Assembly: GCA_021613535.1 (NCBI GenBank)
Contig: CP075496.1
Location: forward strand, 3,472,001 to 3,536,000
Length of the DNA: 64,000 nucleotides
Direction of reading: 5' to 3'
Source of the DNA: Adineta vaga
Taxonomy: Eukaryota > Animalia > Rotifera
How positions within the stretch are numbered: position 1 is the stretch's first letter; the number at the start of each line of letters is the position of its first letter. Under the pieces are notes generated by a model. It searched no databases. It worked only from the letters and a program-made list of their open reading frames with translations, and was not told the DNA's origin. This document shows positions 18,065 to 52,486 of the stretch, one piece after another. The position numbers and the translations under genes are program-made.

Positions 18065-20115
18065 CAATATTGAAAACATTTTTTCCTCTTCAATCTTCTC
18101 AGTTTTCTGCTTATTATATCACGTTTATTCTCTAAATTTACGCAAATAGCTTCCATTTTGAATCGTTTTTTTTTCTATCACAGTAAATATTATATATCTT
18201 TTTTTCATTTCTTCAAAACAAAATATATTAGTTTACTTTAGTCATGATTGACTCCATCTCAATAAACTTGTTTAATATAATGATATCTTTAGTATGAAAG
18301 AATAATCAAATTCTATTGATAACATTCGAAAATCTCATAAAAAAACAAAAGAGAGTTTTATGAACGAAGAAAAGCTAAATAATTCCGCTTAATATATCAG
18401 CAATCCTTTATATTCGAACAATAAATCACCGAGATAAATAAAAACCAATCAAATATTTTCTTCTAAATGAAACGAAACTATGATTTCTTTTATAAACACT
18501 TTAATGCTATCATTCATGTCAGGGAATGTGAATATATGATGAACAAAACTTCGATGTTAGTATTGTTGAAAATTATTAATTAACTAATTTGAATGAATGA
18601 TCGTGCATAATAGAACAATTACTGTCAAATAAAATTGATCAACTATATAATATACATTATTTATCTGATGAGAAAGAACATAACATTTGAGATAAGTTTC
18701 TCTTCCAAATGTCAAATATAATTTTTACGAAGTCGGTCAAAAGAGTGAAAGTCAGATGATGCATATTTACTTTGTTAAGTAATCCATGTAATTTAAGTTA
18801 GTAGTTTTCTTATCTATATTATATAAAATATAATCCACCCCTCTCTCTCTCTCTTGTTCTCGTTAACAAATTACATATTCGAGGAAATATCAATCGTTAA
18901 TGCACTATCCAAGATGTTTTTTCTCATTCAGAATATAGAATTTACTGAAAGATCTGGGGAAAAAAAAGTTTTTTTCCTCTTTCGTTATATTAATCAAATT
19001 GACAAAGACAAGTCATGTTTCCGGTAAAAGTTTTTTGAAACATTCATTCTAACCTCTTCTTTTATCGTCGAACGCTGTTTTTATATTTATTAACTAGTGC
19101 AAATATCCTATCTGAAGAAGCAAAATAGATTATTAATGTGAACTCATCGTCTTTTCTATTTCTCGTTTTTAGACTCATAAAAGCATTTGCTTCATTCATT
19201 CATTCAATAGATTAGTTGTTTCGATGAGAATAAAGAAAAAAAACTGCCGATGTTAATAAGAGAAAATGACAATGTATGATAATATTTCACTGTTATCAAA
19301 ATAATTAGAACGCATCTTGTTTCTATCCTGTTCATTCATCAGGATATTCTTTCAAAGAAATGACTTGTTTTTTTCGCAGTATATGTGTTTGTAGGGACAT
19401 TGAATTAGTGTGTTCATTTATTTATATCGAATTCTATTTCTTCAACGACGCATAGGAGTTTCCATTTCTTCTTCTTTTTTTTTCCTTAGTCTCGAACTTC
19501 CCGTTCGCTTCTTCCTCTCCCATTATTCAATGTTGCGAACAAAGAAGAGGAACGAGAAAAGAAAAGCAAGAAAACGTTCTATATGAACGAAGAACGGGAG
19601 AGAAAAAACTTGATGAAAATAGCAAGAAAAAACCCGACTTCTGTCGAACTCACACGATCTAATAGCGAATAGAATAGCGATAGAAAGACGTGCGTTTTTT
19701 CTTTTTATTCACATATACACAGAACCTTTCCATTAAACAGCATGTCGAACTCAAAGAAAAAACACAACGAGCATCTTGTTTTGTTTAAAAAAAAATACAA
19801 AAGAAAGGAGACTTTTTTTGCTCTCTATTCAATTTCGAAGCCGTACACGCAAGAATATATTTTCTTTTCCTTACAGTCAAGTATTTTGGTAAGAAAGATA
19901 GTTTAATATTTCCTTTTTGCTGAAAGATATAAAAAGAAGAAAAAATGAAATAGCTTTTGGGAATAAAGATGATGAAATAGAATGATATATGGAAGAAAAC
20001 TAATATTTAGTTCTATAGAGATTAGAAATAATGAGAAAATGAAAGATTTTGGTTTGAAATTATTTATCGGATACTTTTTAGATATAACTCAACAGAAGAA
20101 AAAAAAGTTTAAGAT

Positions 20116-21675
20116 ATGTTTCCCATATTTAATCATAGTAATCATGGCCATATGCCGATTAATATCTCACATTTTGTAACCTATCTAACAAAATCTGCAG
20201 CGATTACCACAACAGCAACTCCAGGATCTATTCCATTGGAAAATCGAACACCAATCATGGCAGTAATTATTTCACTTTATGTACTTATATTTTTCTTTGG
20301 TATTACTGGAAATGCGCTTGTTGTTCGTAAGTACATTGGTCGATCCGATCAATTTTGGAAATCTTTGCTTTTTTATAAATAGTTGTCGTTTGTCGAAATA
20401 AAGCCATGCAAACAGTTACCAATGTCTTCATTACAAATTTAGCTCTTTCAGATATTCTAGTAAGAGATTCGAAATCATGTTTGACAAAGAAAAAAATCTA
20501 CTTAACTTTATTATTACTTTTCTAGATGTGTTGTTTAGCGGTACCATTTACACCTATCTCAGCCTATGGTAATACTTGGCATCTTGGAAAAGTTCTTTGT
20601 CATTTAGTACCAATGTCATTGGGTATATCAGGTAGGAATTTAAAACATATTTTACATAATAATTATTAATTGATTTTGAATAGTTTATGTTTCAACATTA
20701 ACATCATTAGCCATTGCTGTCGATCGTTATTTTGTGATTGTTCATCCATTTCGTTCTCGAATGCGTTTAGGTGTATGTGTATTATTAATTATTGTTATTT
20801 GGATTGTCGGTATATCAATATCGTTACCATTAGCAATCTATATGCGATTTGATAATGGTAAATGTGAAGTAAGTTAACGAAAATAAAAGAAAAAGAGAGA
20901 AAATTTTGGTTTCTATTTTTGAATCGTTTTTTCTTTTCATCTATAGGAATATTGGCCACAATATACATCTCGACGTTTTTTTAATTTTTCATCTTTAATC
21001 TTACAATATTTAATACCATTTTCCGTTATATCATTTAGTTATTATAAAGTTTGGGTTGCACTTGCACGTCGTTCATTACCGGGTCGTACACGAATACGTG
21101 AAGAAGTTGAAATCTGTCGTAAAAAACGAACAAATCGTATGCTTATTGCAATGGTTGTCATCTTTGCACTATGTTGGCTACCGTTAAATATCGTTCATAT
21201 GGTCGCAGAATTTCGTCGTCCAACATTAAATCATTACAAAGTTCTCTTTCTAAGTACACATGTTATTGCTATGTCATCAACAGTTTACAATCCATTTTTA
21301 TATTCCTGGTTAAATGATAATTTTCGAAAAGAATTTCAACAAATTCTACCATGTTTATTTAAAATGTGCTGGTGTTTTAATCGTCGTCGAACTAATAATC
21401 CATCAACACAATTATCAAATATTGTCGATGGAGATGTTTATGATCGTCCATCAACGTATCAATTGCCAGCGGAATCAACGATCGCAACCTATACTCAAAC
21501 CTGTCCGCATGTAAAAAACTCTTCATCAAATGGAAAATTGAATGGTGTACCAATGAAAAAACTTACCAATCAAGATATATGTCTCATTGCACCAACTGAT
21601 GATGCATCTGTACATTTAAATTCTCAACAAGAAACATTGTTTATGTCAACAAATATAACTTCAAATCATATTTGA
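20116..21675 (+). CDS. Class A neuropeptide GPCR, NPY / prolactin-releasing peptide / sNPF receptor family, 5 exons
   Basis: GITGNALV (TM1), VTNVFITNLALSDIL|MCCLAVPFTP (TM2), CHLVP...LAIAVDRY (TM3), FALCWLPLN (TM6), AMSSTVYNPFLYSWLNDNFRKEF (TM7/H8). Confidence 0.9.
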
Positions 21676-24376: not shown

Positions 24377-27300
24377 TCAAGATGATACAAAATTATCAAA
24401 CGAACCCAAATATTCCAATGCTGAACGATAACAAAATTGATATTGATCCTAAAAAGAATTCATCAATTAAATCGCTGTGTTTTATAATATTAGAGATTCT
24501 TTACTTCAGTTTGAACAAGTGCTGGTCGTTGTGTGCGTAGTAATTTCACCGTTTGAAAAACATCAACAACACCTTCATATCGTATTCGTTCAAGAACAAT
24601 ACTTAACGTTAGAAATACACCCGTTCGTCCTGCACCTATAGGAATCGAAAATAAATATATGTTTTATTTGATTTTTCAAAGAAATCATTACCAGCTGAAC
24701 AATGTACAACAATTGGTCCTTCTTGACCAAAACCTTCTTTTGTTTTATGAACTTGTCCAATGAAATCAATAAAACCTTCGCCAACTTTTGGTACACCTTG
24801 TTCAGGCCATTCAGTATAAAGAAAATGACGAACTGTTCGAGATTGTCCATCCTATTACGAAGGAAAACTTGAATATAATCAATTTTAAACATAAGCAAAT
24901 TTCTTACTCTTGAATCTGTCAATTTGAATTCACTTAATAAATATTGCGGCATATTATAAGCACCAACTGGATCAACAATAAAATATCCATAACGTGCTGA
25001 TCGATCTGTTGGCCAATATTGAACACATTTTTCTCTACCCATCTCTTTTAGCTTAGTTAACATAACAATTATTGTTACATTATGTTCCCAAATCATTCTC
25101 CAGAAATCATCGATTGTTTCTGTTAATGGTCCTTGAGTTGCAATATAACCATTCTTAAATCGATAACCCTATATGAAAAGAATTGATTATCTATTGGAAA
25201 CAACAATGTATTTAACTTACATCAATATAAGATGCATTAATATAATCAGATCCTTCGACCCCACGCACAGGTGATAGACATACTCGCGTATTTTCATCTA
25301 GAATGATAAAATTTTGATTCTTTTTTTTTTCGAAAAATAAAATTAACTTACAAGGAAGAATATTCACTAGACGATTTTTGAATTTATTAGCTGGATTATT
25401 TGCACTGAGAAATTTCGATGGTTGTGCTTTGATATTTGACAAACGCTAAACGAAGAATTCTATTCAATCTATTTCTTATTTTGTATTTATTTACTTTAAA
25501 TTCAAGTTCCATATCTGTTAATGAACTATCATTGATTGGTTGTAGTAATCGTTGTAAATGTGTCAATAAATTTCTTGCTAAAACTTCTGTTTGACCTGAT
25601 TGAATGGCTTCATTGATGGCTTCATAAATAAATATATATTGTTCTTCAGTTTGAACAATATAATTTCTATTTTGGAAAACAAAATACAATAAACTATGAG
25701 AGAATTTTCTATGCCTTACCGTTGTGCTCTGAGTAGGGTGACATGTCCATAGATATCAATGGTTTTCTCCTGTTTCAATCTTTCTAATAGAGCATCTACG
25801 ACAATAAAACAACCCGTACGACCGACACCAGCCGAACAATGTACAACTACAGGTCCAGCATCTATTGGATTAAGAACTTTAACGCGTCGAACAAACATTA
25901 AAAATGATGTGGCATGTTCTAATATTCCATGATCTATTCGATAACAAGCACGTTTTAAAATGAGAGAAAATCCCATGAAATATTTCATTCATACCTGGCC
26001 ATGCAGTAAATTGACAATGTCGAATTTCTCGTTTTTCAGGATGACCAGTCTTAATATGAAAAGGAAAACAAAGGTTCATTTGAATATTTTCTCATATAAA
26101 AATCTTACCCATGCTATAGTAAATGTTCGAATACTATACGATGAAAGTTCAATCAAATCTGTTAAAGTCACTTGAATTGATCCATAAATTTCTGTTCCTC
26201 TTGATGGCCAATATTGATCACATTTCAATCGATTTCTTTCTTCTAATTTAGTCATCATAACAATACAAGCTGAATTTGTTTCCCAAATCATTCGCCAAAA
26301 ATCTGCGAATGTATTTGGTAGGGGTCCTTGAGTTGCTATATATGCATTCTGTTTTCGATATCCATCGAGATAATTTGCATTGATATAATCACTTCCTGGT
26401 ATACCATCGATAGAATGAAGAATCACACGAGAATGATCATAAGCAATGACGTTTGCATAACGATTTTTCGGTTTATTATATTCATATTTCGAATTTTCCC
26501 AGGAAAATTGTTGACCTGGATCAATTGACTAAAAGAAAATATTCATGAAAAAAAACGATCTCTGATTTAAACAAGAACATGATGATTTACTTCATATTCT
26601 TGCGAGAATTTATAATTATCAGCAGCTTTTAAACGTTCGAGATGTTCACCAAATTCTTCGATATGTATTGGAGGATGAGCATTTACTGGTACTTCTTTAT
26701 TGATCGTATGATATGTATTTGATAGTTGTGTTCGTCGAAATTCAACAGGTTCATTGGATGATGCTGGTGAAATAGTCGATGGTAATATTGGCATTTGCAT
26801 TTCCATTGTTAAAACTTTTGGTGTTAAATCAAATGGTACGCATTCAGGTGGTGGTGTTAAAGGTTTCTTTTTTGTTCGATTATATTTCAATATAAATATT
26901 ATAATAATTAAAAGAATTAAAAAGATTAAAACTATGATTCCAAATATCCAAAGTAGATTATAGAATGTATCTTGATTTTGTGGTGGAACTAATTTTGGTA
27001 CTAGACTAACTTGTACGGTTGAACTTGATGTTGTAAGATTTTCTTTTTTACGATTAAAACCCCAAGAAACTAATTTGACTTTGCATACACTCATTAATGG
27101 AGAATTATTATAAACTCGATTATGAAATGGTTCCCAATCACGTGTTTCTTTACCATCACCTAACACGAATACTTCCGGTAATTGAGATTCATTAAATACA
27201 GCTGCTGTATAACAACATTCTCTTCGACCCTAGATAAAAAAACAACAACACGTGTTCGTGATGAAGAGAAAAAAAGGCAATTTTGTTTTTCTATACTTCT

Positions 27301-30300
27301 TGTGGAACATATTGTTGATAAGAAATATGTTCAATAAGATGAACAACAACATAATATCGATCAATAGGTCCATTCTTGTTCGAGGCACGGTGAAGACGAA
27401 GATATACTTGTGATGCTTGTGATGATCCACTAGTTGTTTTCGAAAAAGTTCGTCGATCTTGTTCAGGTCGATCAACATACGAAGGTGCATCGTAATCTGT
27501 CGATAAACGTATAGTTGCTGGTCGACTATATATTTTAATTGATGAATGTTCCGATGATGATATTGTACCAGTTAAATTAAATGTATATTGTGTATTAGGA
27601 ACTAATCCTGTTACTAGCCATTCACGTGAACCTTGCGTTGCAGGAAGTGATATGAGACCAGCTAAATTATGATGTGATGTACTACGTGTTGTTCCTAAAC
27701 CATCGACATAATTTTGAATACCTTCATAATGTACCTTGAAGAGGAGAATTGAATGAATAAATCTGGGGTTTTTTTTTGTTCGAAAAATGCAATGACAAAC
27801 CTCAAGTTTTTGTATATGACGACGATGATCAGGATTTGTTTCATTAAAAAGAAATAATAATTTGACACTATTCGATGTTAGATCAACAAAAGTCAGATTA
27901 TATGGTCGACTTAAATGATCGTCATAATGAATAATATCTTTTGAACCTAAAGGAGAAATAAACAAATCTAATTAATTCAATGGAATGAATATCTTTGTAA
28001 TTAAAGGATATGAATTCGGAATAAATTACTTCAATACTTATGAATTTCTTTCTTCTTCTATTAAATTGACAAAGTAGTTTCTTTTCCGACAAGTAACGTT
28101 TGTCTTTTAACGTCATTTGCTTATTCATTTTTTCTCTTGTCAAAAATCTGTCATAAGGACTTTTCACAGAATAACTCAAAATAATTTATTATACCAGCAG
28201 AAAAACTAGGGAAACTTTATAATATATCATAATTAATCGAATACTTTGATTTCATGTCAATTTCATACCTACATTTTCCCATCAAAAATGCCTTGACATT
28301 CAATGATTGATCAAAAAAAAGTAGATGGATTTAACTTGAGTTCTAAGGTTATCAGCACAGGCGCTGAGTTTAAGTCTCTTTGATCCGAACTTGACACATC
28401 ATGTAACCGTTTCTTATTCTCATGCAAAAGTAATTTCCTCCAACATCCATCATATGTCATTAGAACGAGAAGAAAAGAATGTAAAAGTAAGAGCGAACAT
28501 TTCTTGATAACAAATAATATTCTTTGAAACTATCGTATTACTTTGATTCAAATTTTTCAATATCCTTTTAGTTAGAATCCTCATTCAACATTTTCCAATA
28601 CATGATCTAATAATAATATTATTATCATCATCAAGAAAACTAATTTCTCTAAACTTGCCTTACAACTATCGTTTTACTATTCTCTATATCAATCAATTCC
28701 AGTACAAAGACTGATTGAAATCTAATTTAAAAACCAGTTTCTATCTTCCTGTTTCTTGTTCCATTAACTTTTTCAAACATTTTTTTCCCTTAATCTCATG
28801 GGATAAAGATCTTTACAACTGATTATTGATCTCTATGGACGAACTAATAGAATTGATGATTACTATATATATGTGTGTGTGTGAGAATCTTTTTCATAAG
28901 ATTGATCATGCAGTTTTGTATAGAATGATGATGGTCAGTTGAATGGATCAATTTTGCAGACCAATGATTACATGATAGACACATCATCACGTCGATCACC
29001 AGACGGAGATCATTAAAAGAATATGCACATGAAGAATCGATCACGAAGAGACATGTGCACATATTTATCTTTCACTATTTAGAATGCATAGAACATCAAT
29101 TAAGATCAGCAACATCTCATCAGCCCTTTTTTTCTTCTCTTTCTAACCTTGAGAGACAGAAAAAAACAGAAACTTAAAACTCAATGGAAAAAAGTTTCTT
29201 TCTTTTTTTTTCCAAACACTATTTATCTGATAATATACTCTATTCGTTTTAAAAGAATTACTAGTATTTATTCACTCTGATTAATTGAGAAAAAAGAGAC
29301 ATGACATCGACAAGAAAAATATTTTCTGTCATGCAACAAACCATAAAAATTCTCGCTTTGCAATAGAATATTTCAAATAAACTTACGACGGTAGATATCA
29401 GCAACTTGTATTTCAGACAGATCACCTTCACGTGAACTGCTACCCGATGGATAATGTGATTCATGATTAGTTGTTGACGAAAATTCTGCACTAACACGAA
29501 CATTATACATAGCATCAGGTTTTAAGCCACTAATAATTGCTGTTGTTGAACCTGAATTCGGTGGAGAATATAATGACCATTTATTTTCAGGTTTATGATC
29601 TGCTTTATCATTATAATGAATGATATATCGTACTACAGATGGATGATAAACAGGCGACCAAAATACTTGAATTGTTGTGTCATTAATACGAACAACACGA
29701 ACATCACGTGGTGCGGGATCTAAATAAATAAAGATGTTTACATATGTGCATAATATAGATGACTAGAATCAACAAAATGATGAGTAAATAATAAGTTGTT
29801 CAAACAAAAAGGTTTTTCTTTTGTTTAATGTCTTACAAGGTGTTGAACGAGGTACTTGAGCATAATAAATATTTGGACGTATAGTGGTAGTAAAAGTCAG
29901 ATGATGATTTAAGAAGAAGAGAAATATGAGAAGAAGTATGTGTTGAAACATGAAGTATGGCATTAAAATAATGCTTAGCTTGGTATTATTATCGTTGTCT
30001 TTATCATTATATAATAGACGTAAGTTGTTTCTATTCTTTAGTTTTAATACAATAATCTATGATGAAAGACTCATTGGCGAGTTTTTCTTCTTTCTTCTTT
30101 TTCGTTTCTCTTTTTTCTTGTTTTAATAATAACCACAGTAGAAATGGAGAAATCGAGACAGGGAGAGAGAGAGAGCGACAAGAAAACGAGAAGGAAAAAC
30201 GATCAAATTTTACATCTGGGCAATGTCAAGAAAAGAGACTTTCTTTCACTGAACGTTCTTTCTCTCTCTCTCTTACTCAGTATTCCTCTGTTCGCTTGCT

Positions 30301-33300
30301 TTGTTCTCCTTTCTTTCTTCAGGGCAGTTAATGCCATAGAGAGAAAAGAATAGGATGAAGAAGAAGAAGAAGAAGAAGAAAAAATAAGAGTAGATATCGA
30401 CTACTACCACTACTCCTATTCTCACTGCCTTTTTTTTCTGTCTACATAGAATATGCAAACAAAAAAAGAAATGCGCTTTCGCCGCATGAAAGAAAGAAAG
30501 AAAGAAATGGAAAAGAATGGGAACAACATAAAAAAAAGAGTTGTCGAATATAAAAGCATGATGAAGTTGAATCGACCATCATATAGATGTTTATATATCT
30601 ACATCTATACGTGTAATATGAAACTGTAATCATGCATATGATCTGATTTCTGACAAAATAGATTCTATTCTAATTTGCTTATTTGATTGAACATCCATGT
30701 ATGAGAAGAAAGATGCATATTCGATTGAAAAACCTTGGAATTTCTCTTCTATATGTCAATCGATCATACTTCTTTTTCCGTGTAACATCAATCAAATATA
30801 ATAATAGCTGCCACTCATCTAAGTATATGCGCATGAATTCATGAGAAAATGTCGTTCTGTCAACATCATTTCTTACTCTCTTTCTCTTAGTGAATCTTAA
30901 TATGTTTGAAGAAGTTCGAGACATAGAATACATATTGATAAAAGATGACCGACTTAAATTCAATCTTTAAATATTCACATCTTTACTTACTATTTATATT
31001 GACATAAAATTGATATTCAATCTTTGATGAATTTTGTCCATTTCGATCAGAACATAGAGCCGAGAATAAAACTGTTTGATTAGGATGAATACCTACAAAA
31101 GTTTTACTATTAATACAAGAAAATCAAATGTACTTCTTCATTTACTATAAGGGTCGTTAATATTTATTTGAAGATCTAATTTTTTAATTGAATTATCGAA
31201 TGATTGTGTTTGAATCGTTCGATTTTTCGATCCAAGTTCAATCACAGTGATGTAAATTCGATCAATTGCATTAACATTCGATGGTAAATCCCATGTTAAA
31301 CTTAATGTATGTGCATTGACTACATATGCTGTAAGATTACTTGGAGTTAATTGTCCTAAAAAAACAACAACAAAGAAATGAATAATTTGAATTCGCGGGA
31401 AAATTATTTCTTTTTTTTTCTACTCTGAAATATTCATGGATGGATCTAATCTAAATCCTGAAATACTCTTATCAGAAAATTCATATCAAGTTAATAAAAA
31501 GAGTAAACAAGACAAAACATGTCATTTCTGTTGTTTATTCGCAATGAAATGTTATCATCAATTCGATATTTATAATTCATCGAATATTTTCTCGAGTCGA
31601 AATGAAAAAAATACTAATGCTCTATCATCAATAAAAGATCTATGGAAAAATGAAATGAAAATCAATCAATCACCTCTATATGATCTTCCTCCATGTTTTC
31701 ATAAGAATTTTTCATCAAATCAACAAAATTCAACCACCGATTCTCAAATAACTCCTCTTAAGGTTTGAAATATTCAATTCTGAGAATGAAAACAACAATT
31801 TCAATTAAATTAGAATATTTCTTCATCATCACATCAATCATTTGAAAGTCTTCTCCGTCGTTTACCAAGTCCACCAAATAGTGTGATTAGTCTCCAATTA
31901 TCAACTGATGATGTGAGTAAAAGTTATTTGTTTTAATTATATAATCATTCAGACAAAATATAGACGTCTGTAAAGCAAAAGTAATTATATCTGACACTGG
32001 GGTTTCTCGTCATTGACCATTATAAGTTATCCAGACGAGAAACTTCGGTAGACTTGAGCTTTTAAGAAAAAAGAAATCCTAGTGAAAATAACAGGATCTA
32101 TGTTTCCGGAAATAACTAGAAAGAAAAGCATTATCAACATCACGACTTCCATTAGTGTTTCGAAAAGAAAAGGAAAAGAAAACCTAGAAAAGTCTGAACT
32201 TGAATTCAGACAGATTTCTCATCTACATAACTTCTGTCTTTCTTTGAAATCAACCATGATTAGTACTACAGATTTTCGGCTGAGATAAATTACAGAAGAA
32301 AATTAGTTCATGGAAAGTTTAAGACTACACTCGAATCTTAATAAAACACTGTTTTTTTTAATATATAAACCGAAAAAAGAGTCATTCAGATAAAATATGA
32401 AGGAATTCTATTTTGAACTATATAGAGACGTAGGATGTCTCGACGCCGTCCTTCCAATTATTGATAGTTACATAGCAAATATGTCTATTGGTCGAAACGA
32501 TCTAACATCTGTTTAAGACCAAGAATTTAATAACATCAACAAACTAAGCTTGATCTCAATCGAAATCTTTTGAAAGTCTAATTGTATAGATGTTGACTGA
32601 AGAAAATCAATTGGAGAAACGAATTCTAACGTTTTCACAATCTTCTCTTCACCAGGCATGTTGATGTTTATTTTAAATTTCTAAGTTAAATTTGATTATT
32701 TAGTCGACTCTATCTCTTTTTTAAAACAACAGAATACTGATCAATTTTCCGTCGATTCATCATCTTCATTTTCTGATTGTTCCTACTCGAAAACAAGAAA
32801 AAAACTAGTAAATATAACTTTCATCGTTCACAATAACAACAAGAGAAAAAAAGAACGATGATTTCTACATAATAGAAATTAATGAATAAAGAAAATTCTA
32901 TGGAAAGATTGTCTTCAATTCATAATCGATCAAATCAAAAATCAACATTAGTTGACAATAAATGTAATCACATTTCGAAAAACAAGTCATTACTTCCTTC
33001 TCAAAAATCTATTCTAGTCAACAAATCGAATCATCCATCGGATTTATCTCAAATAACAATGACTCAGTTTATTCAAGATATTCATACAAAATATGAAGCA
33101 ATTATTGAATCACCTACAATTACTCAAGCACATTATTCTTATCCGAAATATAAAACTATTCCATCACCATCTGTTCCAAAATGTCTTCGTCAATGTTATC
33201 AATTGAATTGGAATTCAATTGTAGATAAAACTTTTCAATTGAATCTTTTTGATTCATCTCTATTTCAATGGAAGCTTATTCATTCAAATCAACAAAAGAA

Positions 33301-36300
33301 CTATTTTTCTCGAAAACGTTCAACAATCTCATTCAATACATTTCAAACTCCGATTCAATCATTGATAAATTATATACAATCACAACGACAATATGTTCCT
33401 TTGGAATATTCATCATGGAATGTTTCATTTCCTAATTATGATCCTATGAAGTTTTCTTTAAAGAAATTCATTTCATTAAATGGAAAATTATTAAGTAAAA
33501 ATCCTCATGGACGAACTGGTCTTCAGGGTCAAGGTTTCTTTGAAAATGTTGGACCTAATTATTATATCATCTCGATAATTCTAACAAAGAAAAATTCTAT
33601 TTTATTAATTAAAAATTCTTTTAATCGATATGAATTACCAAAAAGTCGAAGTTTAAAGAAAACTTTTCATTATCATACACTTGATATTGTTTATCTCGAT
33701 CATCCATTGAATACAGATGATGCATGGATTGAAATTCAAATAATTCTTATTAGAAAATCATCAAGAAATCGATCGATAAATTCTTGGTTTTCATTCAAAG
33801 AATTATCTCAACGCAATGATATCGAAGATTTTGATTTCAATTTAATCAAATTTTATCTCTAGACGACAAGACTATATCTAATATTCACTCAATGTCCATC
33901 AGACGGTCAATGATGCTTAAGGCGACTCTTTCCATATAGTCTTTAGTAATCAATAATTTCTTTGTGCTTTTTCTTCTTTTCTTTTCTCGCTTATTCACTT
34001 ATCGAATCTATTCGATTTACACATGATTTCACCAGAACTAGTAAAAACGAAGAGAGAGAAAGAAAAGTCTTTCTTTTTTTTCTTGTTATTTCATTTTCAT
34101 TGATTAAATCTAGTAGGAGAATGATCAATAATGAATATTGAAAAATCATCATCTTCTTTGTTTTCTTCGTCTATTTAGAAATATTGTATAGATCTATTCG
34201 AAGAATTTGATCAATCAAGACATTTTCTTCCTTTCACTTCATTCTCGATCAAGTGTCTTTAAGTAAAATATGAATTAGTTGGGTGTCTGTCACGCACTAA
34301 AGAGAGAACGGCTACTTCCGGCAAGAATACACACATGCTCAATTGGACATTACGATGACCAGTTCTCTTTCAACAATCGTGACCTATGACATCGTGATGA
34401 TGTAATCAGAAACAAAACAAGTTTTCCCAGCAGTTAAGAATAGTAAATTAGATACAACATCTTGTTTGAAAACATCACCAGCCGGACAACAATCAATTGA
34501 GCTAACCTCATTAGATATTTTAGTACATTACACAACTGACATATATGCTTTTATTTCTCAGAAATTTCTAACTAACTAACAAAAAATGTATCCACCTGAA
34601 TTGTCGATTGAACTCATTTATCTTTCAGCAGGATGTATATATTCATCATAGAAACAAATCTATACAAAAATAGACAATTACGGATAGACATATCGCCACC
34701 CCCTACTAAGACGCAATGCGCAGTGGAGTACGACTGACTAGTAGCACTATGTCTTTGTGTGTGATGATGAAGGAGAGAAGGAAAAAAAACGCAGAGCATT
34801 GCATAAGAACTTTCATTATTGATTTCTGTCTGTTTAGTAGAATCATAGTGCTACTGCTGTTACTACTATTCCTAATAGTGATGAGCACACACACATCGGC
34901 AAGATAACGGAGGATTCTTTCTATTGAGTTTTTTTCCTTTATAACAATTATTGCTCTTCAATATATAAACAAGAAAGAGAAATAAGAAAATATATATATA
35001 TATAGATATGAAAAAAAAACGCAAAGAGAAAACAGAAGAAAAAGAAAACGTAATTTTTCTTCTCATTTTCTCGTTTTTCGAGCGTTAAGGGCGTGTCTAA
35101 AGATCATCAAGATGATCAATCACTTTTCATCTATATACACGCTAAGTAATCTTTCATAACATATATATATATATACTCGAATTATAAATAATAGAAGGTT
35201 ATGACAAGACAGATAGCACCGAAAAAACCGATTAGGAAGAGATTCTTCATTTAATTCACTCACGAAAATCTTCTTTTGGAACGGTAAATATAAATGGTAC
35301 ACTTGGTTTTCCATCGCCTTTTTTCGTAAAAGCTTTCACTTGTGCATGATATGTTGTTCCAGGTGTTAAATTTCCCACGGTATCCCAATATTGTGTACCA
35401 ATAGTTCCTTCATAATTACGATGAACAATTGGTGGTTGCATTGATAAAGGTGCAAAAACGATCACATAAAAACCTTTTATCATTCCACCAAGTAATGAGA
35501 TATCATCGGGATTATTTGTATCAAGTGGATAGATCCATGATATATTGGCAGTTGTTTGATTAATCATATATGCGCTTACATTAATCGGTGCAACAAGTGG
35601 AACTAAAAACGATAAGATGACGAATACTGACCACATCCGCATACGAATTGCTTGACTGACTGGCTGACGTTGTTCAAAACAGATCGAGCAGATCTACGAC
35701 AACCGACTGTTTCTTTCTGCGTTTCTCCTCTTCTCTCTTTCCTTTCTTCACATCCACCACCATCTATCCGAAATTATTTTCCCTTCTCCTTTTTGCTCTC
35801 TCTCTCTCTCTCTCTCTCTCGTTCTCTTCTCCTCTTTCATTGTCTCTCTTCTCTCCGTCTCATACTTTACAATAAGCATCGTAGAGCACAGGAACAGTTT
35901 ATTCTATTTATTTCATCATCTATTCTTTAACGACACAAAGACAACGATGACGACTTCTTCATTAGAAGATCTCCGCCCTTCTATATTGCAGACGAGCAGA
36001 AGGGAACATGCACACACACACAAATATATATATATCTATCTCAATGCTATGCTATTTGAGAAATTATCCTTTCCGCCGATCATCTGATACTAAGTTCAAG
36101 CTTAAAAAGCACGCTAACGATAAAATTAAATTTTATTCATTAGTTGCTCAATTTTCTTCTTTATTAGAGATATATTTATCTGAATATAATCATATATTAT
36201 TTTTTCATTTCTTTTTTCACATATTTCTATGGTCTAATGATGATCATCAGTTGAGATATTCAAGTGTTAAGACTGTCACTTAAATGAATGAAAGAACAAC

Positions 36301-39300
36301 ACATATTTTTACAAGAGAAATAGACAAGAAGACATTGATGATGTTTTTATTAATTGTGGCATTTCAAATGATATGCATATATATATCCAATGGGACAGAT
36401 AAAATGGACAGTTGTCCGTCTGTCGGACTATTTTGGTTACTAATGAAATGGATAGTTTGAAGAGAAGAAGAAGAACAAGATCAATTGCTACTGTCATTCT
36501 AAATTAGCTGACCAATTCTTCTCCGTTGAATAAAAGAAATTGTCTTAATGCATCTGAAAATATCTTTTCGTTTGGAAATAGTCGTCGTCTTCTTAATCTT
36601 ATTTTGCTTGTTACTTTTTTTATCATGCATAAAAGAATCTGAGTGAAAGGTAATTTTAAGTGGTAGATAGATAGATACTTGTTCTTTTTGTCTTCTCTCT
36701 TCTCATTCAGTTATATAAATGAGTGAACAAGTGTAATAGAGAAGGAAATGAACCTTGGATGTGTCATCTTCCGCTAGAGAAATGCAGTTATCTTATGTGC
36801 ACAATGCAACCAGGCATGGCTGACACATCTTTTTCTTCTTACACATTTTTTTCTATTAAGACTTTTTTTTCAAGACTTGTTACGATTACTAAGCTCATTT
36901 GTCGTTAGTAATAAAGCCGACTAGAAACATCTATATTGATTCTAGTTTCTTTTTACTTCTCCTAAATGTGTTTCAAGAAAAGCTATATTTTGACATGAGC
37001 CGGCTGATAGTAATTGAAAAAAAAAGACGTTAAATGATGACGAGGACATCAGGGGGTAGTAATGATAATGATGACAACGAATTGGAGATATACTCTACTG
37101 GGAATTTTCTTTTTCATAATCATATTCAAAATATCTCTTAAGGAAGACTTTCTCGATCTATCTTATTATAAATTTTTCTGCATGAATAATTTCAATATAC
37201 ATACATATATATGTATGTTGATCATTCAATGAAGCAGGTGTATTATTCGTTAATAGAATTGCGTCAAAGCACAGTTCCGTATAAACTCAATTTACAACTA
37301 TTCATAGAAATTGATTTTATTAACGTAACTTTATACATATATAAGCTTTAATTCATTATTGCCTGTTAACGATTCTCTGCTTGACATAAAGGTCAATACT
37401 TAGTGAGAAGAAAAGAGTAGGTTCGATTGACGATTATTAGTGGGCAAACTTGTACTTTTCTTGTCTTGCGTCATTCCTTCTTTCTTCTACGTAAGAAAAA
37501 AGGGAGGATATGAGAAGAAGAAGAATATGCTTACTATTCTCTAATTGATTAACCGAACACAAATAAAAGGAGAGAAGAATTTCTTTCTTTTTTCATACGC
37601 GATATGATGAGATTGAACAGATCTTGTTCGTTGGTTAAAAGAATTTAGTAAAAGTAATCAAATCGAATCTCATCATTTCTATAAGACTTAATCTAAGTAA
37701 AAAAAAAGGCAAAGAAGATTATATCAAGAGAATATTTTCCTTGTTTGCAAGGCTAAACTTTCTTTTCTTACAGTTAATTCCCTCGATGAAAAAAAAACAA
37801 ATCGTAAATGCTAGAGGGAATACCAAGACGAATTTTGATTTTCTTCGATATAAAATATTTATTTCCGAAGCAAATGATTAGTTTTTTTTTGATTAATTAA
37901 AAACTCAATCGGATTTGTATGTCTGAATATGTATTTATGTTTTCTAATCTTATAAAAAGAAAAATCGATGTTTGAATTAAATCAATCAAATAAGTAAACC
38001 AACGGATTTGACAGAGAAATGTATATATCGAATGATTGATGATAATCAATAACAAGAAATCTTCTCGACTTGTCAAACAATTTGATTGGTAAAGTATCAA
38101 GAAGAAATATATATATATAAATACATATGTATTGTATTCGATCAAGTGGAGAAAAGAATACTATTCATATGTTTCTAATAAAAAGCTATCTGCATAAAAG
38201 AACATGTGAAAGATATTGCTTCAAGGTATATAATAACAATCAATAAATGCCTATTAGCTTGGTCTTTACAATTACAACTTGTTACAATTGAATTTTTACA
38301 CTCTTGAAACTATATAGAGATTATTTTCTAACAAAGACGAGAAAATCTTTTTCATGCTTATTATATGCATTAAGAAGGTGTCTCAAAAGACATGACTATA
38401 GGTAATAAAAGTCATCACGACTTTAACACATTGAATTATGGACGAAAAAGAAATAGATTACAAATCTAAAGTATATGATAACATTCGAAAAAAGAATGTA
38501 CTTGAACACTTGAAATATGAGAAGTGTAACATAAATATCTTCGATAGTTCCTCTATTCATTCGAACAAATCTCGAGAAAAGAAATAATAAAAAAATTTCG
38601 ATTAAAAAACAATCAAATGTAGTGATATCTATTTTAAAAAAAAAGATATTCTTCACATCTTTTCATAATGTCATTGTCAAGATTTAGTTTCACTTCATAG
38701 TGTCATATTGTATCATCAGAATCTGCATGATTCATTAAAGCAAGATCACTGTCATATCGACTTAACAATTCAAATATAGAATAAAAGAAACGCATAAATC
38801 TAACACATCGAAAAAGAATTCTACGCTATTTTGTTTATAAATCTTTATAAATATTTCATTCTTTATCAAGTGTTGAATAAATGTTATTCAATCTTCTTTC
38901 ATGTTTTACATATTTGTTGACAAAGAAAACTTACAACTTCAATTGAATAGTATTCTATGGAGATTATTTATAATTTCATCGAATATTCTAAAAGATCAAT
39001 ATCTTCCTATCTCTAAAGCGCAAATTTGTTTTTCTTCTAGTCTTATACTTGATTAATACACTCTCCAAGGATAAACCATTGTAAAATATTAACATCAATA
39101 GGTTTCTTCGATAAAAAAATACAAGATAATTTCAAAAAACTGATTCTTTTAATAATCAAATCTGAATATTGTATTTGATTAGATACTCTTCAAGTATCTA
39201 ACAAAACAAAAACAAAGAAACTATTCAAGTATGTTCATCGAAAATTCACTTTCAATCGCATATATCTCAAAACATCAGGCAATCATTCATGAAAAAAAAA

Positions 39301-42300
39301 TACTATTCTTTGATCTATCACGTAGAAAGACGAAGGGAAAAAAATACTTATTTCTTTTTTCTTTCTCATTTCTGTCTAGACATTGTCTTAACCAGCCAGT
39401 CAAGCATTGTTTTATTTGAACAGGAAGTTACCTGTTTCATCTGTGATCACTTCTATACGTGTTGATGGACCTGACGAATCTGTATACGAGGAATTGAAAT
39501 AGGGTTGAAGTATAATTTCATATTTTGTTATTGGACGTAATTCATGCAAAGAAATTTGTGTATCATTGGTTTGTTTTACTATCCATGATTGATTGGAATG
39601 AACTGGACGATATTTAACTGTATAACCATAAATATTTGCTGGTAAACGTGTAGGTTTCATCCATGATAAACGTATGAAGTCTTTATCGGTAGCTAATATA
39701 CGAATATCATTTGATATTTGAGCAAAATTATTTGTAATGAAAAAGAATATTGACGAAAGAATAATAATGAAATACAACATATTATGTATCTAAGTTGAAG
39801 TGATAAGAAACGAGTGTTTTTTAAAGAATCGAAAGTACTTGTTTAAGGTTAGATTTAGTTGAATAAATAAACTGGACAATAGTGTGAAGGAAAAAAATTG
39901 AGAAAAGATGATGATGATCATCATTTGCAATCAAGTTTTTCTCTTTATGATATATATATATATAGAAAAGAGAAGAGAACGGAAGCAGAATGGAAGAAGA
40001 GCAAGAACGACCTCGATCATCATCGTCTATTTGAATCGAAGGGAGAGAGAAATATTGCTTTAACTTAATTGCATTGTCCTCAATACATACTGTAAAATAC
40101 AATGGATTGAACGATGGATAAAAAAAAGAAGATGAAGAAAGAACAGAAGAGCAAAAAAAAGATGAAGAAAATCAGTGTATCGACCGATGGTCGCCTAATT
40201 AATTCAAGACAATTTCATTCATCATTTCCACTAACTACAACCGACAAACATCTATCTTCACACATATATATATATACTGATCTATTAATACAAGATTTCC
40301 TGATGCAATAGACTCTCAGTGATAAAGTTTGCCTTTACTCTAACAAAATTTGCATGTGACACATTCGATCTAAATGTCACATAAATGGTTACTTCTTCTT
40401 TTTTTAGCTAGATCTAAATCTAAGAACTCACATACCCTTATCATGCAATAGACATGAAATGCATTGTCCTTTCTTCTTTTGCTCTCATTCTTTTTTTCTT
40501 CTGTAGAGGATTGCATGCTGACGATGTATGTGCTCATTAGTCGTTGAGCACCTGCTTTAAATAAAAACTGTACAACATACATATACTGAGAATAGGAAGA
40601 AAAAAGATGAATGGATCGCAAATGCAATTGAAAAAAAAACGAGAAGAAAAACGTCAGCCATCTAACTTAAAATTGACATCTATCGAGTTCATTGTTCATT
40701 TTTTTTGTTCTTACTTTCCGGTTATTATCGTTTCTTTTTTTCTCTCCCCTTCAATTACTGATTTTTATAACATTTTGTATTCAAGTAGTTTTTCTCGTCC
40801 GTTCATACACTTTTCTATTATGCCCGATTCTCTCTTTCTTTCTCGTTTCTTTTTTCAAATTTCAACATTTACATACAGTGTCACTTTTGTTTACTTCATC
40901 AGAAATCTTTAGATGAGAATTGTATGAAAAATATTATTACGCTCTTATGAACAATTGATAAGATCTAGAAGAGATCAGCCTTGACATACAATTTCCATTA
41001 GAAAAGCAATCGATTAGAATTTATTCCCGAAACAAGAGAAAATTTGCATTTCTTACCATATTTTCTTGCTAAAGTACAATAAATAGCTGATTGTGTCAAT
41101 GCCATATGATTATCATTGTGATCAATAAAAGCTAAATGTAATCGTAAGACATGTTGTTGATTATAATTCAAATTAAACATAGTATTATTAAATTCATATT
41201 TATATAAATCATAAGGATGTTGTTTATTAATTGTTAAAGAAGTTATTGGAATAATTAATTGACGTATAAAATCATTATTCGTTTCTGTTACATCGACATA
41301 ATATAAAATATATTTCTTAATATATAAACGTGATTCATAATCGATCGACCATTGAATAGAAAATAAGTGATTTTTCTCATTCGATGAACATTGAAATTTA
41401 TCAATTGTTGATATTAAATGAGGATTTATTAACGTACGATTAATGATATGAAAATCACTTAAGATAGAACCTTTTGCATTAACAGTAGCAATACGAGTAA
41501 AAAGAAGATAATTTGATGGAATTGTTAGAGTTAAAACATAGAATGGATATGTTCGAACAATGACATGAGACCATTGTTCGAATGGTATTGAAGTATTTAT
41601 TGTGTAATAGAGTACATAATACTAAAAATAATTCAAATAAAACTTTAGTTTTCAACTTCAATACGAATGTCGATAGGAAAGAATAATACAAATAAACTCT
41701 TGAGTTTAAGTGTAAATCAACATGATCAAAGAAAATCGGCACATTTTTTTTTCAAAAAAGATTATTTCCTGAACATTAACAATTGAGATGTACCCTTGAG
41801 AGTTTCGTAACATTATCCTGTCAACTTTGTTTACTATGCTATTTCTTAGATTAACAATGTCATTCTGTAGAATAGAATACAAAATTTTCTGTAATGATTT
41901 TTATCTCATTTTTTTCTGAAGACTCAACTTTGTGAACTTCAAAGTGCATTGTTTGGAGAACTATTTTCAAAATAATTATTAGAAATGTTTTTATCAAAGT
42001 CGCTATCATCGGTCTGATGCTTTCGGACGAGATAAGTGAACTTCCCACATAAAAACTTCCTTTTCATTGCTCTGAAACACAAACTTCTTTTCTCAGATAC
42101 AGTTCAATGAAGTCTATCCACCTCATGAAAAAAGAAAGAAACTAAAGTTATGACAAATAAGTTTATCATTTTACACACAGCTGATCTTTCTGCTTCATTG
42201 CTCAGAAATTCTCATAATCTTTAGTTAATGAAATCATATTTAGAATGAGTTTTTTTCTTACAAAATTCGGTCCATTCGTTGAATTTGGTGGTGTCCAATG

Positions 42301-44448
42301 AACAACAACAGCTGTTTCATTCCAAACATAACCATGAAGATTTTCAACTTTTTCCGGTACAGTTTCGACTGTTTTCACAAGAACTGAATTTGAATAAGCA
42401 GATGGTGTAGCACCAACGAAACCCTTCAATCGAAATTCATATTTCGTATATGGAATTAAATCCATCATCTAAAAGAAATTCTTTTAACATAACAAAAACA
42501 AAGAAATGAAATCTTTACTCGAAATGTAAAACTATAATGTGTCGTTCGTGGATCGACAAGAACTTGTTTATAATCTTGAATATTAATAATATTCATTTCT
42601 TCTTCGTTCATTTCACCATGAGAAGTTGGTAAACGACGATAATAAATAATAAAATGATTAAATCGATCATACCGTCCATTCGATACTCTCCATGTTAATA
42701 AAACACTTCGACTTTGAATATCAGTAGCACTTAACAATGGTTTTGTTTGATTATCTAGAATATATATGTATATATGTACATTCATTTTTTTCATCTTGTC
42801 AATCGATGTCGTTTTCACACACCTGGTATAATAACAGAAATAAATATTTTTGTTGAACCATGCTTATTTTTTGCTTCACAAATATATGTATTCACACCAT
42901 GCATTTCCTGATCAAATCTGAGTAATGCTCGTGTTAAATTTCGTGCAAGAAAATTCGAATCGGATGCTGAGAAGAGAAAGCAAATGAAAATAGGTGATTA
43001 GCTTCATTTTTTTCTTTTTATTAAGAGAAAGAAAACCTCGAATCCAAACAACATCTGCTTCAGGATAACCATCTGCAATACACAGAAGATCTCTAATTCC
43101 ATCATGTTGAAGATCAATTTGAGTATGATTATGTAAATTTTCGCGTATACGAGGATAGATCATGCGTTCTAAATATCAGATCATGCACAAACAAAGAAAA
43201 GACATGCATCGACTATCTCACCTGAAACAATCAATGATCGTATACTGGAAAATGATCGACCAAGAGTATTGGAAGCAATACAAATATAATCACCATCATC
43301 AGCAAGTTCAACAGGATAAACTGACAAGGAACCTATGATGTTAACGGAAGACATTTGTCATTGCAAGTTTAAGAAAAGTCTTCTTTTATTATTTTCAGTT
43401 ATTAGAGTCAAGATTAATTATAGCTTGTCGTTAGATTCCTTCTACTTATTTATGTATTCGTCGTTCTTTTTTTCTTATAGTACTTTGCTTGTTGCATCTT
43501 TTCTTTAGTTTCATCTCATTAGTCGGAAGTTGAAGAATGTCTAAATCAACCTAGGGAATGTTGTTTTTCATCAAAGTTCTAAAGCCAGAAAAGCATATGT
43601 CTCTGTTTAGTTTCGAAAGAAAAACTTCTCAGTTAACATATTCATAATATTCAAAAAGAAAAAAGAAAAAACGTTCATTTTCATACTTGAATGTTTTGTT
43701 TCTTGTATCTTAATTCGTTTACCATCATTTTGTATGAAATGTATTGTTTTTATTCGTTCTGAATGTTCATCAGCAGATGTATTTTTTAAATGTATCCATA
43801 AAAATTGTATTGGATACGGACTTGCTACGGATTGACATTTTGTATGAAATGCGCCACCAATTTGCACTCGTCTTCCAAATGTAGTCGCATCATTTTCATC
43901 GAGAATAAATGGAACATGATATTGTATAGCTAATTTACCTAATTCTCTTTCATTGTACATTCCCATTGATTCATCATATTCATTCATATCATTCAATGGT
44001 AGTTTAACATCGATATAAGCCGATGAAATCATTTCATAAGTTGAATTGATATTTACATGACAGGTATATTTACCAGCGAACATGTCAGGTTCTTTAACAA
44101 CGAGTACACTCGTCGATGTTCCATAATAAAAATCAAAACAATCCGAATTATTAAATAAACGTTTACAATGTGTATCAGTATCATTTGTCTGATCAAATAA
44201 AGATTCATAATGCCAGCGTATTCGTTTGAAATTAATATGATGTGATGTTTGACAAATATGATAAACGAATGCATTAGGTTTATAAACAACAGTTAAATTG
44301 TGTAAATCTCGAAGAAATGATATAGCCAATGTAGTTCCTGTAATGATTAAAAAGAAAACAATAGATACAAAAAAAACAACACAATTGAAAGTTCCGGTTT
44401 ACCTTGAATGAACATCCACAGTTGGTAAATGAACCAAACTACAAACAT
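24377..44448 (-). CDS. Lar: LAR-type (type IIa) receptor protein tyrosine phosphatase: signal peptide, 3 Ig, multiple FN3, TM, tandem PTP D1/D2
   Basis: Signal peptide [15 protein letters not shown]|GTTLA (ATG 44448). Ig domains ([25 protein letters not shown]...YICEAKN) and FN3 exons. [26 protein letters not shown]1 has KNRYANV, YIATQGP, WP|[14 protein letters not shown]; D2 has VHCSAG|AGRTG. Ends [14 protein letters not shown] at 24377. Confidence 0.93.
29837..29963 (-). CDS. Putative alternative first coding exon of the LAR gene: signal peptide only
   Basis: [25 protein letters not shown]..., 127 nt, ending CCT T|GTAAG (phase 1). It is in frame with the FN3 exon 29387-29719 directly downstream. 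Confidence 0.7.
30357..30380. repeat. (GAA)8 microsatellite
   Basis: Perfect GAA run upstream (minus-strand sense) of the 29963 start exon. Confidence 0.85.
31436..33862 (+). CDS. Nested antisense gene inside a LAR intron: low-complexity N-terminus plus degenerate NUDT9-homology domain, about 5 exons
   Basis: The last exon has [38 protein letters not shown] and [14 protein letters not shown], matching NUDT9 motifs. Upstream exons (31436-31762, 31814-31913, ~32590-32660, ~32704-32807) were joined by eye and are less certain. Confidence 0.65.
35264..35642 (-). CDS. FN3 exon of the LAR gene (internal 35264-35602) with an in-frame upstream ATG and hydrophobic leader
   Basis: [23 protein letters not shown]...[20 protein letters not shown]. 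Symmetric phase-1 exon of 339 nt. The upstream extension reads [13 protein letters not shown]. Confidence 0.75.
35796..35820. repeat. (CT)12 microsatellite
   Basis: Perfect CT run about 150 bp upstream (minus-strand sense) of the ATG at 35642. Confidence 0.9.
39432..39780 (-). CDS. Putative alternative first coding exon of the LAR gene: signal peptide + FN3 domain
   Basis: [20 protein letters not shown] followed by an FN3 (LSWMKP...GYTVKYRP...[13 protein letters not shown]). The exon is 349 nt and ends at a phase-1 GT donor. Confidence 0.8.
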
Positions 44449-48616: not shown

Positions 48617-49322
48617 CTATAAATTTCGACATCGTTGCTTATTTGCTTGTTGATTTTTATGATGATAATCAAGAAGTTTATCGGTTTGAATTACTATTTT
48701 ATCGCGATACATAATATTAAAATTAAACTTTAATGTAAATTCAAATGTAATATTCGAACATAGGTGAACTCGACTGAAATTATCAGTCACATTCGATTGT
48801 AATCTTTCATATCCATTGCCCTTTACGTATCTACCACGATAATGACCTGTTGTATAAATTAATTGTTGAATGACAGGTTTGGATTTCTTCACATAAATTA
48901 TTGAATCTTGATTATATTTTTCACCCAAACGAAATAATTCTTCTAATTCATCTTGTGGTGATTCATTATGTAATATAAGAAAAAAACTTCGTTCTATTCC
49001 ACCATCATATGAACCAATGATCGAGGAGTAGATATAAAAATCTTTAATATCATCAATTAATTTGTTTGTTCGTTGTTGAATGACATAATCGCTTAGATAT
49101 AAATCATTCAACATAGCTGGATTTCTTCCCGCACTTATAATTGCATATCCTCCATTATTCAATAAATGTTCAATCGTTTTCCGTGAAAATGTTAGTGGAT
49201 TAATTGATGACATCCATTCTAAAGAACGAAAATATTTGAAGAAAAGAAAAATTTCGTCAATGAATACCTTCTGTTGTTGGATGGAAACAAGTAACAAGTA
49301 ATAAGGAAATAAAGAGAATCAT
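48617..49322 (-). CDS. Secreted protein with a DUF3293-like / phage-protein-like domain, 2 exons; HGT candidate
   Basis: Exon 1 MILFISLLLVTCFHPTTE, a 49-nt GT-AG intron (49219-49267), then YAIISAGRNP...GSYDGGIERSFFLI...LGEKYNQDSIIY. Confidence 0.7.
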
Positions 49323-49870: not shown

Positions 49871-51729
49871 TCATTCACTTGCTAATTGATGAATAAGTGC
49901 TTGTTGTTGTACACAATACAAACTTGCTTGTGATAATTGTTCGTGTTCATAACGTTTAATAAGAATTTCGCATTCTTTACAATTATTTCCGGTAAGAGAT
50001 TTATCAATAAATTGTGCTAAAATTTTAATACCATTTGAAAGTGATTCAAAGGTTTTATATGGTGAACGTTTTTGTAATTCTTCTGGCCAACATTGTTCGA
50101 ATGTTGATGGTTGATTTGGATTGAGAATATGACGTGTGATATATGTTGCACTTGCAGCAATCAATGACGGAGCCAAACCAATACATGATATATCAAGTAA
50201 TGCCATATCGATGAGGAATTTTCCAATTGCATGTTGTTCATCACCTGCACTTGATATGAACGAATAACGACGAAGAAATTGAAGACTAAAATAAAAAGGA
50301 AATTTAAAGACACCATGTATTATTAGTTTTGCTTGTGATTTAGTGAAGAAAGGCAAGCAAGAAACACGTTTTAATGAAAAAACTGTTTCACATGATTAGT
50401 CACAAGGGAAAGCATATTTTCTTATTTACCTGGTTGGTCGATTCAATTCAAAGTGTAATTCATGAAGAATTTTCTTTTCCATTCTTTTTACTTGATCACT
50501 TGTATAAGTATGATCTGTGACATAGACAAGTTCATCTACAGGTGGATGATGAGTTTCCTAGAAATAGAAAAAAGAAAATAGCGTGTTATCTAATCGATAG
50601 TTTCGTCTACAAAAGAGAAAGCTTACTTCAACTTTTGCTGCAATAAGAAATGCAGCAACGGCAATTAATTGTAAATTTTTTTGTGTTACAAACGATGTAC
50701 CAGCTGTTGATGCATTTATACATTGCTGAAGAAAACGATCAAGTAAACCGATGCAACTAGAAAAATAGAAAATAAATTGTTCAAATATTAATTCAATACA
50801 AGTATATCTTATTGTTACTTACATATGCATAGCATCTTGTGATAAATGAAATCTAGCATAAAATAATTGTATAATCCATCCGACAACAATAGTTCGATGT
50901 TTTGTTGTTAATTTCCATGGTCGCGTTGCACTACCATTTGCCATTGTTGCCATTGTTGTTAATGGAAATGATGTTGATGATGATGATGGAACGGTTAAGA
51001 ATGTCGATTGAATTGGATATTTTTTTTCTAATGTATATAGTAAATTCATTATATCAGCAACATAATCCATTGCATATGTTGGATCAATTGGTTCATCATC
51101 TTCATCGGTTTGTAAATCATCATCAGTTAATGCTTGTTCAATAATTTCAATTGTGAATTCTTCGGCTGTATATTTATCAATAATTTGTACAGGTATTATA
51201 ATTGCTTTTTTACGTAATGTATTGGATATTGTTGGACGTTTTGATGCACGATTTTCTTTGTTATCATTACTAATAGAAAATTTTGTTTTGGGTTGTTCAA
51301 CCAAATCCATTTTTTTGACATTTTCAGCTAATGATGCTACAATCTTTTTTCCGAAAAAAAAAGAAAATGAATTCAATGAATAGATCTTATTCAATGAAAA
51401 CTTACAACTTGTTTTAATGTTTCGCCTTCTCCAGTTGAATTATCTAATGAAGAACCTGAAACAATCACAGCTAATTTATGTAATGAACGTCGTCGTTTGA
51501 AGACGATATTGTTTTTTGCACTTGTACTTGATCGTCGAGCTTGAACTTGTTGTTTGTTGAGACCAATTGTAGTTAGATCATTTTCACTTTTAATCTGTTC
51601 ATTTTGAATCGGTTTTAATGTATTTGTTGATGGAGCAAGAATTGAATTGCGAATTTTTGATTGACGTGCTAAGGAAGCTTTCGTTGGACGTGGAACAATA
51701 ACTGATGGACGCTTGATTGATGGTCGCAT
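49871..51729 (-). CDS. B-type (G2/mitotic) cyclin, divergent, 5 exons
   Basis: DYVADIMNLLYTLE; cyclin box HRTIVVGWIIQL...LLDRFL...LQLIAVAAFLIAAKVE|ETHHPPVDELVYVTDHTYT...MEKKIL; PT|SLQFLRRYS; PSLIAASA. Confidence 0.85.
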
Positions 51730-52130
51730 AATGGAAACTTTTGACTTAAAAGACAAGGAAACGAAATGATCTAGAAGATAAACGTTGATAATTATGAAAA
51801 ATTCATCATAAGACAAAGAATGAATTCTGTCGATATTTCACTGAACGATATCGGCAGCCGCGAACAAAGAAATTGAAAATCAAGTAGAATTTTATTTTCA
51901 ATTAATTTATTGAATTTAAAGAAGTTTTTTGTTTGTAATTTTAAAGAATTTTCCGAAAAAAAAGTTTTCTTTTTATAAAGTGCATAGATGTGTTGAAAAA
52001 GTATGGAGGTGAGATAATTCGATGTATTGACCAATGAAATTCGTTCACCTATGAGAATGCAAACGATGTACGGGGCAACTTGTTTTTCTTTTCACTTTAC
52101 TGTCGATCTCGTATCTGATATTGATTAACG

Positions 52131-52261
52131 ATGCGAGCTAAATGGCGTAAGAAACGTATGCGACGTTTGAAACGTAAAAGAAGACGTAAGTTTAAAATAT
52201 ATTTAATTAAATTCATTTAACCTTCGATCTTATTTTAGGTATGCGTGAAAGATCCAAATAA
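52131..52261 (+). CDS. RPL41: Ribosomal protein L41 (eL41/eS32), 2 exons (52131-52185, 52239-52261)
   Basis: The spliced product is MRAKWRKKRMRRLKRKRRRMRERSK* (25 aa), the characteristic RPL41 peptide. A pyrimidine tract lies upstream (~52083-52100). Confidence 0.96.
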
Positions 52262-52486
52262 ACTATCAGTTCATCATCCAAATGGAAAACAACAAATGAC
52301 CTCAAAAATAACCATTAATTCAGATTCAATCTCGTTTACGTTGTTTTTTTTAATGAAAATTTGTTTGTTTTTTAAAATGGATGATGTATATGAATAAACC
52401 GAGACACAAGAAGGAAAATCATCACTAAAACGCATCTTTCATTTGTTTTTCTTTTCTTTTCAATACTCGAATAGATCGATTGAATA

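Follow-up and report, generated by a model that had tools for sequence, protein, structure and literature searches.

In Caenorhabditis elegans, the sole gene for a LAR-type receptor protein tyrosine phosphatase (RPTP), ptp-3, produces three transcripts from independent promoters, which differ in the ectodomain placed on one transmembrane (TM) segment and tandem phosphatase domains (D1-D2); the PTP-3B form has five fibronectin type III (FN3) domains (PMC4418752). Type IIa RPTPs, the family that includes LAR, also vary through alternative splicing or skipping of FN4-7, among them FN4 skipping in vertebrate LARs (PMC9346286). In the alpha, beta and gamma neurexins, internal promoters give shorter, nested ectodomains with an alternate signal peptide (PMC10084454), and clustered protocadherins and chelicerate sDscam rely on paralogous cassettes duplicated in tandem arrays (PMC4835542). 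Here we analyse a LAR-family gene on the minus strand of a 64,000-nucleotide stretch of DNA (the window) from the bdelloid rotifer Adineta vaga, which occupies C4:3472001-3536000 in a searched genome of 100.8 Mb and six contigs.

We propose, with a probability of roughly 60%, that this is one LAR gene with four transcription starts, which would give a mostly nested ladder of ectodomains on a single TM-D1-D2 cytodomain. The longest form would start at 44448, in a module of three immunoglobulin (Ig)-like and three FN3-like domains, dI-dIII (the Ig module, 44448-41057), and would be spliced from 41057 over exon A (39780-39432) into exon B (acceptor 35602, end 35264), then exons C (31355-30991), E (29719-29387) and K (from 27946), making 3 Ig plus 8 FN3-like domains and about 1310 residues before the TM helix. 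A start at 39780 would yield the private FN3 of exon A followed by B, C, E and K (6 FN3-like domains, about 730 residues before TM). A start at 35642 would yield B, C, E and K (5 FN3-like, about 630 residues), the architecture of PTP-3B, and a start at 29963 would join the short leader of exon D (29963-29837) to E and K (3 FN3-like, about 440 residues). The 35642 and 29963 isoforms would be truncations of longer ones; the 44448 and 39780 isoforms would be mutually exclusive. Cell- or stage-specific promoters may in this way set how long the receptor is and which ligand-binding surface it carries, as in ptp-3A/B. The activity of the promoters, all splice junctions, the cleavage of the signal peptides and the function are predictions from sequence.

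Identity of the gene and its four first exons

The tandem D1-D2 domains (24377-26528, with a WPD loop in D1, HCSAGAGRTG in D2 and the stop at 24377) are closest to those of LAR, PTPRS and PTPRD. By local comparison, the D1 exon of the window is 74-75% identical to three LAR proteins. In the genome it has a single close second copy, on contig C1, at 91% identity, the next matches being at or below 60%. The top PDB matches to the D1 exon of this C1 copy are PTPRS, LAR and PTPRD, with about 367-370 bits for PTPRS and LAR and 269 for the next family, summed over both domains of each chain. Upstream of the phosphatase domains lies an FN3 array of up to nine repeats, of which dIII and the membrane-proximal domain are inferred and have no Pfam match, followed by a single TM helix; FN3 K, the membrane-proximal FN3-like domain, the TM helix and the juxtamembrane region fall within 26590-27946 and were placed by local comparison only. 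By its sequence the locus, which is from a bdelloid rotifer, thus belongs to the LAR family of type IIa RPTPs.

Searches were run per exon, and exon translations were joined only locally, for frame bookkeeping and for a domain-level comparison against three LAR proteins. The comparison set consisted of the C1 copy and about 20 loci (numbered L) from other bdelloid assemblies and metagenomes, with homologues from Adineta, Rotaria and Didymodactylos; because alleles and near-identical contigs are among them, the locus counts given below are not fully independent. The C1 copy retains the entire exon order and the upstream cyclin gene. The long relative loci have the exon order of the window, and every locus agrees with it in synteny and orientation. 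A large protein search returned no full-length bdelloid protein among its matches, and a literature search found no publication on a bdelloid LAR.

An ATG followed by a hydrophobic stretch occurs at 44448, 39780, 35642 and 29963. The initial annotation had read three of these as leaders and the one at 35642 as a possible leader; conservation across loci bears out the three and makes the fourth real as well. Leader exon 1 (44403-44448, 15 codons, signal-peptide-like) retains its ATG, its hydrophobic stretch and its phase-1 GT donor in 12/12 loci. The leader of exon A, which is fused to the private FN3 and ends in an invariant phase-1 donor, is found in 78 of 81 homologues, the remaining three being N-truncated; the query for these homologues included the leader, so that a slight ascertainment bias is possible. 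Exon D is a leader-only first exon, encoding a signal peptide and about 20 further residues, and all 11 loci compared, plus A. steineri, keep its ATG, hydrophobic core, R-x-x-I-Y-Y motif and phase-1 GTAA donor.

The leader of exon B (35642-35603) overlaps the 3′ end of an intron, in frame with the FN3 that follows. An upstream in-frame ATG without an intervening stop precedes the B acceptor in 17/17 distinct loci, at exactly -12 codons in 14 of them, and such an ATG is present at control acceptors in 2/11 (C), 0/11 (E) and 2/11 (K) loci. No in-frame stops occur in the B leader across 17 loci, the corresponding counts at control acceptors being 4/11, 1/11 and 7/10. The codons behave like those of a hydrophobic peptide: position 2 hardly varies (entropy 0.1 versus 0.9 and 0.54), and the encoded residues are almost all L, I, F, V or S. 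In Didymodactylos the in-frame leader of B is longer, at 33 codons, which could be chance.

Since all four leaders are kept in the C1 copy and in other bdelloid loci, four conserved first exons, each with a predicted signal peptide, are well supported, and three of them are internal. A comparison of exon order and leaders with other rotifer LAR loci, all from bdelloids, found both conserved. A search of the five large introns in 10 loci for a further conserved leader exon found none, and a fifth leader, for exon C, was looked for without any conserved candidate. Conserved non-coding blocks lie upstream of A (39950-40200), of the B leader (35660-35920, GA-rich) and of D (30180-30340); they are candidate promoters, or 5′ untranslated regions.

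Exons shared between the predicted isoforms

The four collinear exon paths are open, without stops, as far as the TM exon. Phase-1 GT donors are present after 41057, 39432, 35264, 30991, 29837 and 29387, and phase-1 AG acceptors before 35602, 31355, 29719 and 27946, so that all cassette junctions are in phase 1, as first described. The initial annotation had concluded from this that any upstream module could be spliced in frame to the shared region. The phase match holds, and the step to recombination does not follow from it: phase 1 is the default for Ig and FN3 exons generally, and the longest path has it at 11 of its first 13 junctions. Phase 1 is therefore the default of this gene, which is weak evidence and gives no argument for free recombination. 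The linkers DET/VP (39432 to 35602) and STP/YP (29837 to 29719), noted earlier, are both collinear joins.

Exon E is the first constant exon. The E-K intron (27947-29386) varies from 0 to 1440 nt between lineages: it is 1440 nt long in the window, 54 nt in the C1 copy and 63 nt in L037, and is absent in L028. Because it is tiny or missing in these loci, we take E as constant, and the shared region, previously placed from 27946, begins at 29719. It follows that D is a leader-only exon on a constant body, as in beta-neurexin. Exon C (parts 31355-31146 and 31092-30991) is an internal FN3 with a conserved acceptor and donor and no leader; the intron inside it (31093-31145) is present in the window and absent in C1, L015, L019 and L028. 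Exon B keeps its YTAG acceptor in every locus (17/17), its Leu codon always ending in A. As the acceptor is invariant alongside the leader, B is probably a hybrid, serving both as a first exon and as an internal exon that receives upstream splices. The ectodomains predicted from the B and D starts are wholly contained in the long one; exon A has no conserved acceptor.

The FN3 exons share only 18-29% pairwise identity, and for this reason they do not form a duplicated cassette array. At the domain level, dII is closest to LAR FN2 and B to FN5 in three LARs. This collinear order fits the insertion of promoters into an ordinary LAR series.

These observations bear on the reading from which the analysis began, that every promoter brings a different, non-nested ectodomain and that modules are spliced combinatorially, as in protocadherins and sDscam. 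Its appeal lies in the uniform phase of the cassette junctions, in the long conserved introns with many non-coding blocks behind which A, B and C stand, and in the one exclusive pair, Ig module versus A, that the data support. The exons are not tandem paralogues, however, and not every cassette has its own leader: E is constant, C lacks one and B is also internal, so that the 29963 exon is a leader onto a constant exon, the 35642 leader precedes an internal exon, and only the 39780 exon is truly alternative to the Ig module. The starts, moreover, are just four, their number and order being the same in all loci, and phase 1 is expected by default. We consider this reading quite improbable. What survives of the variable-ectodomain proposal is that a single LAR gene has several first exons at internal positions, which bdelloids conserve; the cassette array does not survive. 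Another version, with the four starts and phase-1 exons A, B and C spliced together in various combinations (for example A-C, A-E, 41057-C or B-E), strikes us as rather unlikely. If it were true, one LAR gene would give many non-nested ectodomains, a small receptor-diversification system, and its combinatorial diversity would be built from the ancestral FN3 series and not from duplicated cassettes.

Exon A and the Ig module

The ladder departs from nesting at exon A. The donor at 41057 is kept in 14/14 loci, and neither a conserved acceptor nor a conserved polyA hexamer occurs between it and A. Within exon A there is no conserved phase-1 AG ahead of the first strand of the FN3: AGs are scattered or come after the strand, and in L036 no phase-1 AG occurs before position -6. 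Because the nearest conserved in-frame acceptor past 41057 is that of B, at 35602, A is most likely left out of the long form. The Ig module and A are thus probably mutually exclusive, the sole such pair in the gene. In the genome, exon A occurs only at the window locus and in the C1 copy.

Several observations weigh against the ladder as proposed. Weak phase-1 AGs do exist inside the A exon of the window, at L/A in 6/12 loci and at K/D in 11/12, and acceptors in bdelloids can be low in pyrimidines (7-13 of 14). In three public models (P0025, L016 and L034) the 41057 exon is spliced to weak AGs inside A, and others split the locus into two to four genes. The B leader is short and has no clean cleavage site outside the FN3. 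As to the public models, they look like ab initio predictions, since they end by reading into introns.

The AGs inside A raise the prospect of a fully nested gene, in which splicing to a weak acceptor inside A (L/A, T/D or K/D) brings its FN3 into the long form. The product would be a canonical LAR of 3 Ig and 9 FN3-like domains, and the gene a ptp-3-like ladder with four promoters. Once A is included the domain count is indeed canonical, the A-B linker TDETVP resembles the LAR FN4-FN5 linker TDEDVP, the three public models join into A, and the AG at K/D is there in 11 of the 12 loci. Yet no single upstream acceptor position is conserved in A; the K/D site is an AAG that codon bias for Lys accounts for, and its use would remove the first strand of the FN3; and FN4 does not stand out in the linker score, the A profile scoring best on a different LAR FN3. 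We regard full nesting as unlikely, and retain the reading in which A is skipped. Exon A may nevertheless be an ancestral FN4 that gained a leader.

The invariant donor at 41057 also bears on a possible gene fission, with 44448-41057 encoding a separate secreted Ig/FN3 protein and the phosphatase gene starting at 39780. Spliced-leader trans-splicing could then release the downstream mRNA from a common precursor; more than half of bdelloid transcripts are trans-spliced (PMC1925144). The Ig region is no longer recognisably similar to LAR, models for A. ricciae and A. steineri end the Ig gene at about 705-725 residues, and a conserved block follows the 41057 donor, all of which would suit two genes. 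The strong donor at 41057 is invariant, however; no conserved terminal-exon acceptor or polyA signal was found, the read-through tails are unconserved, and synteny and orientation are retained in every locus. Fission seems to us improbable, and a single gene remains the preferred reading. The block after 41057 was considered as a terminal exon and rejected: neither an acceptor nor a frame nor a polyA signal recurs consistently in it, and it resembles a regulatory element.

The Ig region itself (42823-44337; exons 44337-43687, 43332-43222, 43168-43037 and 42966-42823) is an open frame of three diverged Ig-like domains, identified by weak Pfam Ig matches below the cut-off and by look-alikes of Ig type. 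It has no PDB match and no detectable similarity to the Ig domains of three LARs, and in the genome it is found only at the window locus and in the C1 copy; searching the genome with the Ig region of a canonical LAR returned only generic matches of about 30% elsewhere. Judged by these comparisons the region is unusually diverged for a LAR, and because of this divergence ligand binding may differ from that of other LARs. The dI-dIII domains follow (41057-42754; exons 42754-42519, 42468-42262 and 41621-41057), ending in the conserved phase-1 donor.

Surrounding sequence and relation to known systems

Dense conserved non-coding blocks also occur in the large introns (34150-34860, 36700-37300, 40930-41020 and 28900-29110). 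They are common even to the C1 copy, several contain GATA-like and TGTCA motifs, and they are likely enhancers. Antisense to the gene, within the B-C intron, lies a 328-codon open frame (32876-33859, plus strand) with no Pfam match. A gene is called at its place in A. ricciae (311-451 residues), and the C1 copy has no match to it; one of its motifs recalls NUDT9-type ADP-ribose pyrophosphatases.

Upstream of the LAR gene is a cyclin gene (49873-52300, minus strand), a synteny kept in C1, Rotaria and A. steineri. Between the two lies a 233-codon open frame (48620-49318, minus strand) that matches the Pfam family S-AdoMet_lyase (PF23780, E 3e-8, above the cut-off) and has no match in the C1 region; this gene was possibly acquired horizontally. 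Downstream, on the opposite strand, a rhodopsin-family G-protein-coupled receptor gene (7tm_1) occupies 20113-21672 (plus strand), and it is downstream in L037 too.

In domain order the encoded protein resembles PTPRF/LAR, PTPRS, PTPRD and Dlar, with three Ig-like domains, an FN3 array, TM and D1-D2. Unlike in these type IIa RPTPs, the Ig region has no LAR match, diversity would come from first exons, and no mini-exons were identified. The layout is closest to that of ptp-3, being that of a sole LAR gene whose predicted transcripts differ in ectodomain on one TM-D1-D2. The isoform from the B start would have five FN3-like domains, as do PTP-3B and a short vertebrate LAR form (PMC4418752). The rotifer gene differs in having four starts against three, in having one first exon with a whole private FN3 that is seemingly absent from the long form, and in having one leader that lies within the 3′ part of an intron. 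Exon D would work like the internal starts of neurexins; the proteins are unrelated, and the analogy is one of gene layout only. In clustered protocadherins and sDscam, promoters are chosen cell by cell and the isoforms bind homophilically in an isoform-specific manner. The rotifer locus shares with them alternative first exons with signal peptides on common 3′ exons, but its four starts are non-paralogous and stand inside an ordinary LAR domain series. It is no code on the protocadherin scale.

Since public bdelloid models split this LAR gene into two to four pieces, our analysis corrects its annotation. Two of its features would be unusual: one first exon would bring a complete FN3 of its own and shut out the Ig module, and one signal peptide would be encoded within the tract of a splice acceptor, which would place that sequence under dual constraint. 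Ladders of LAR ectodomains chosen by promoter, known in nematodes, probably exist also in a spiralian lineage, including the form with five FN3 domains, and whether such ladders are ancient or arose convergently can now be tested.

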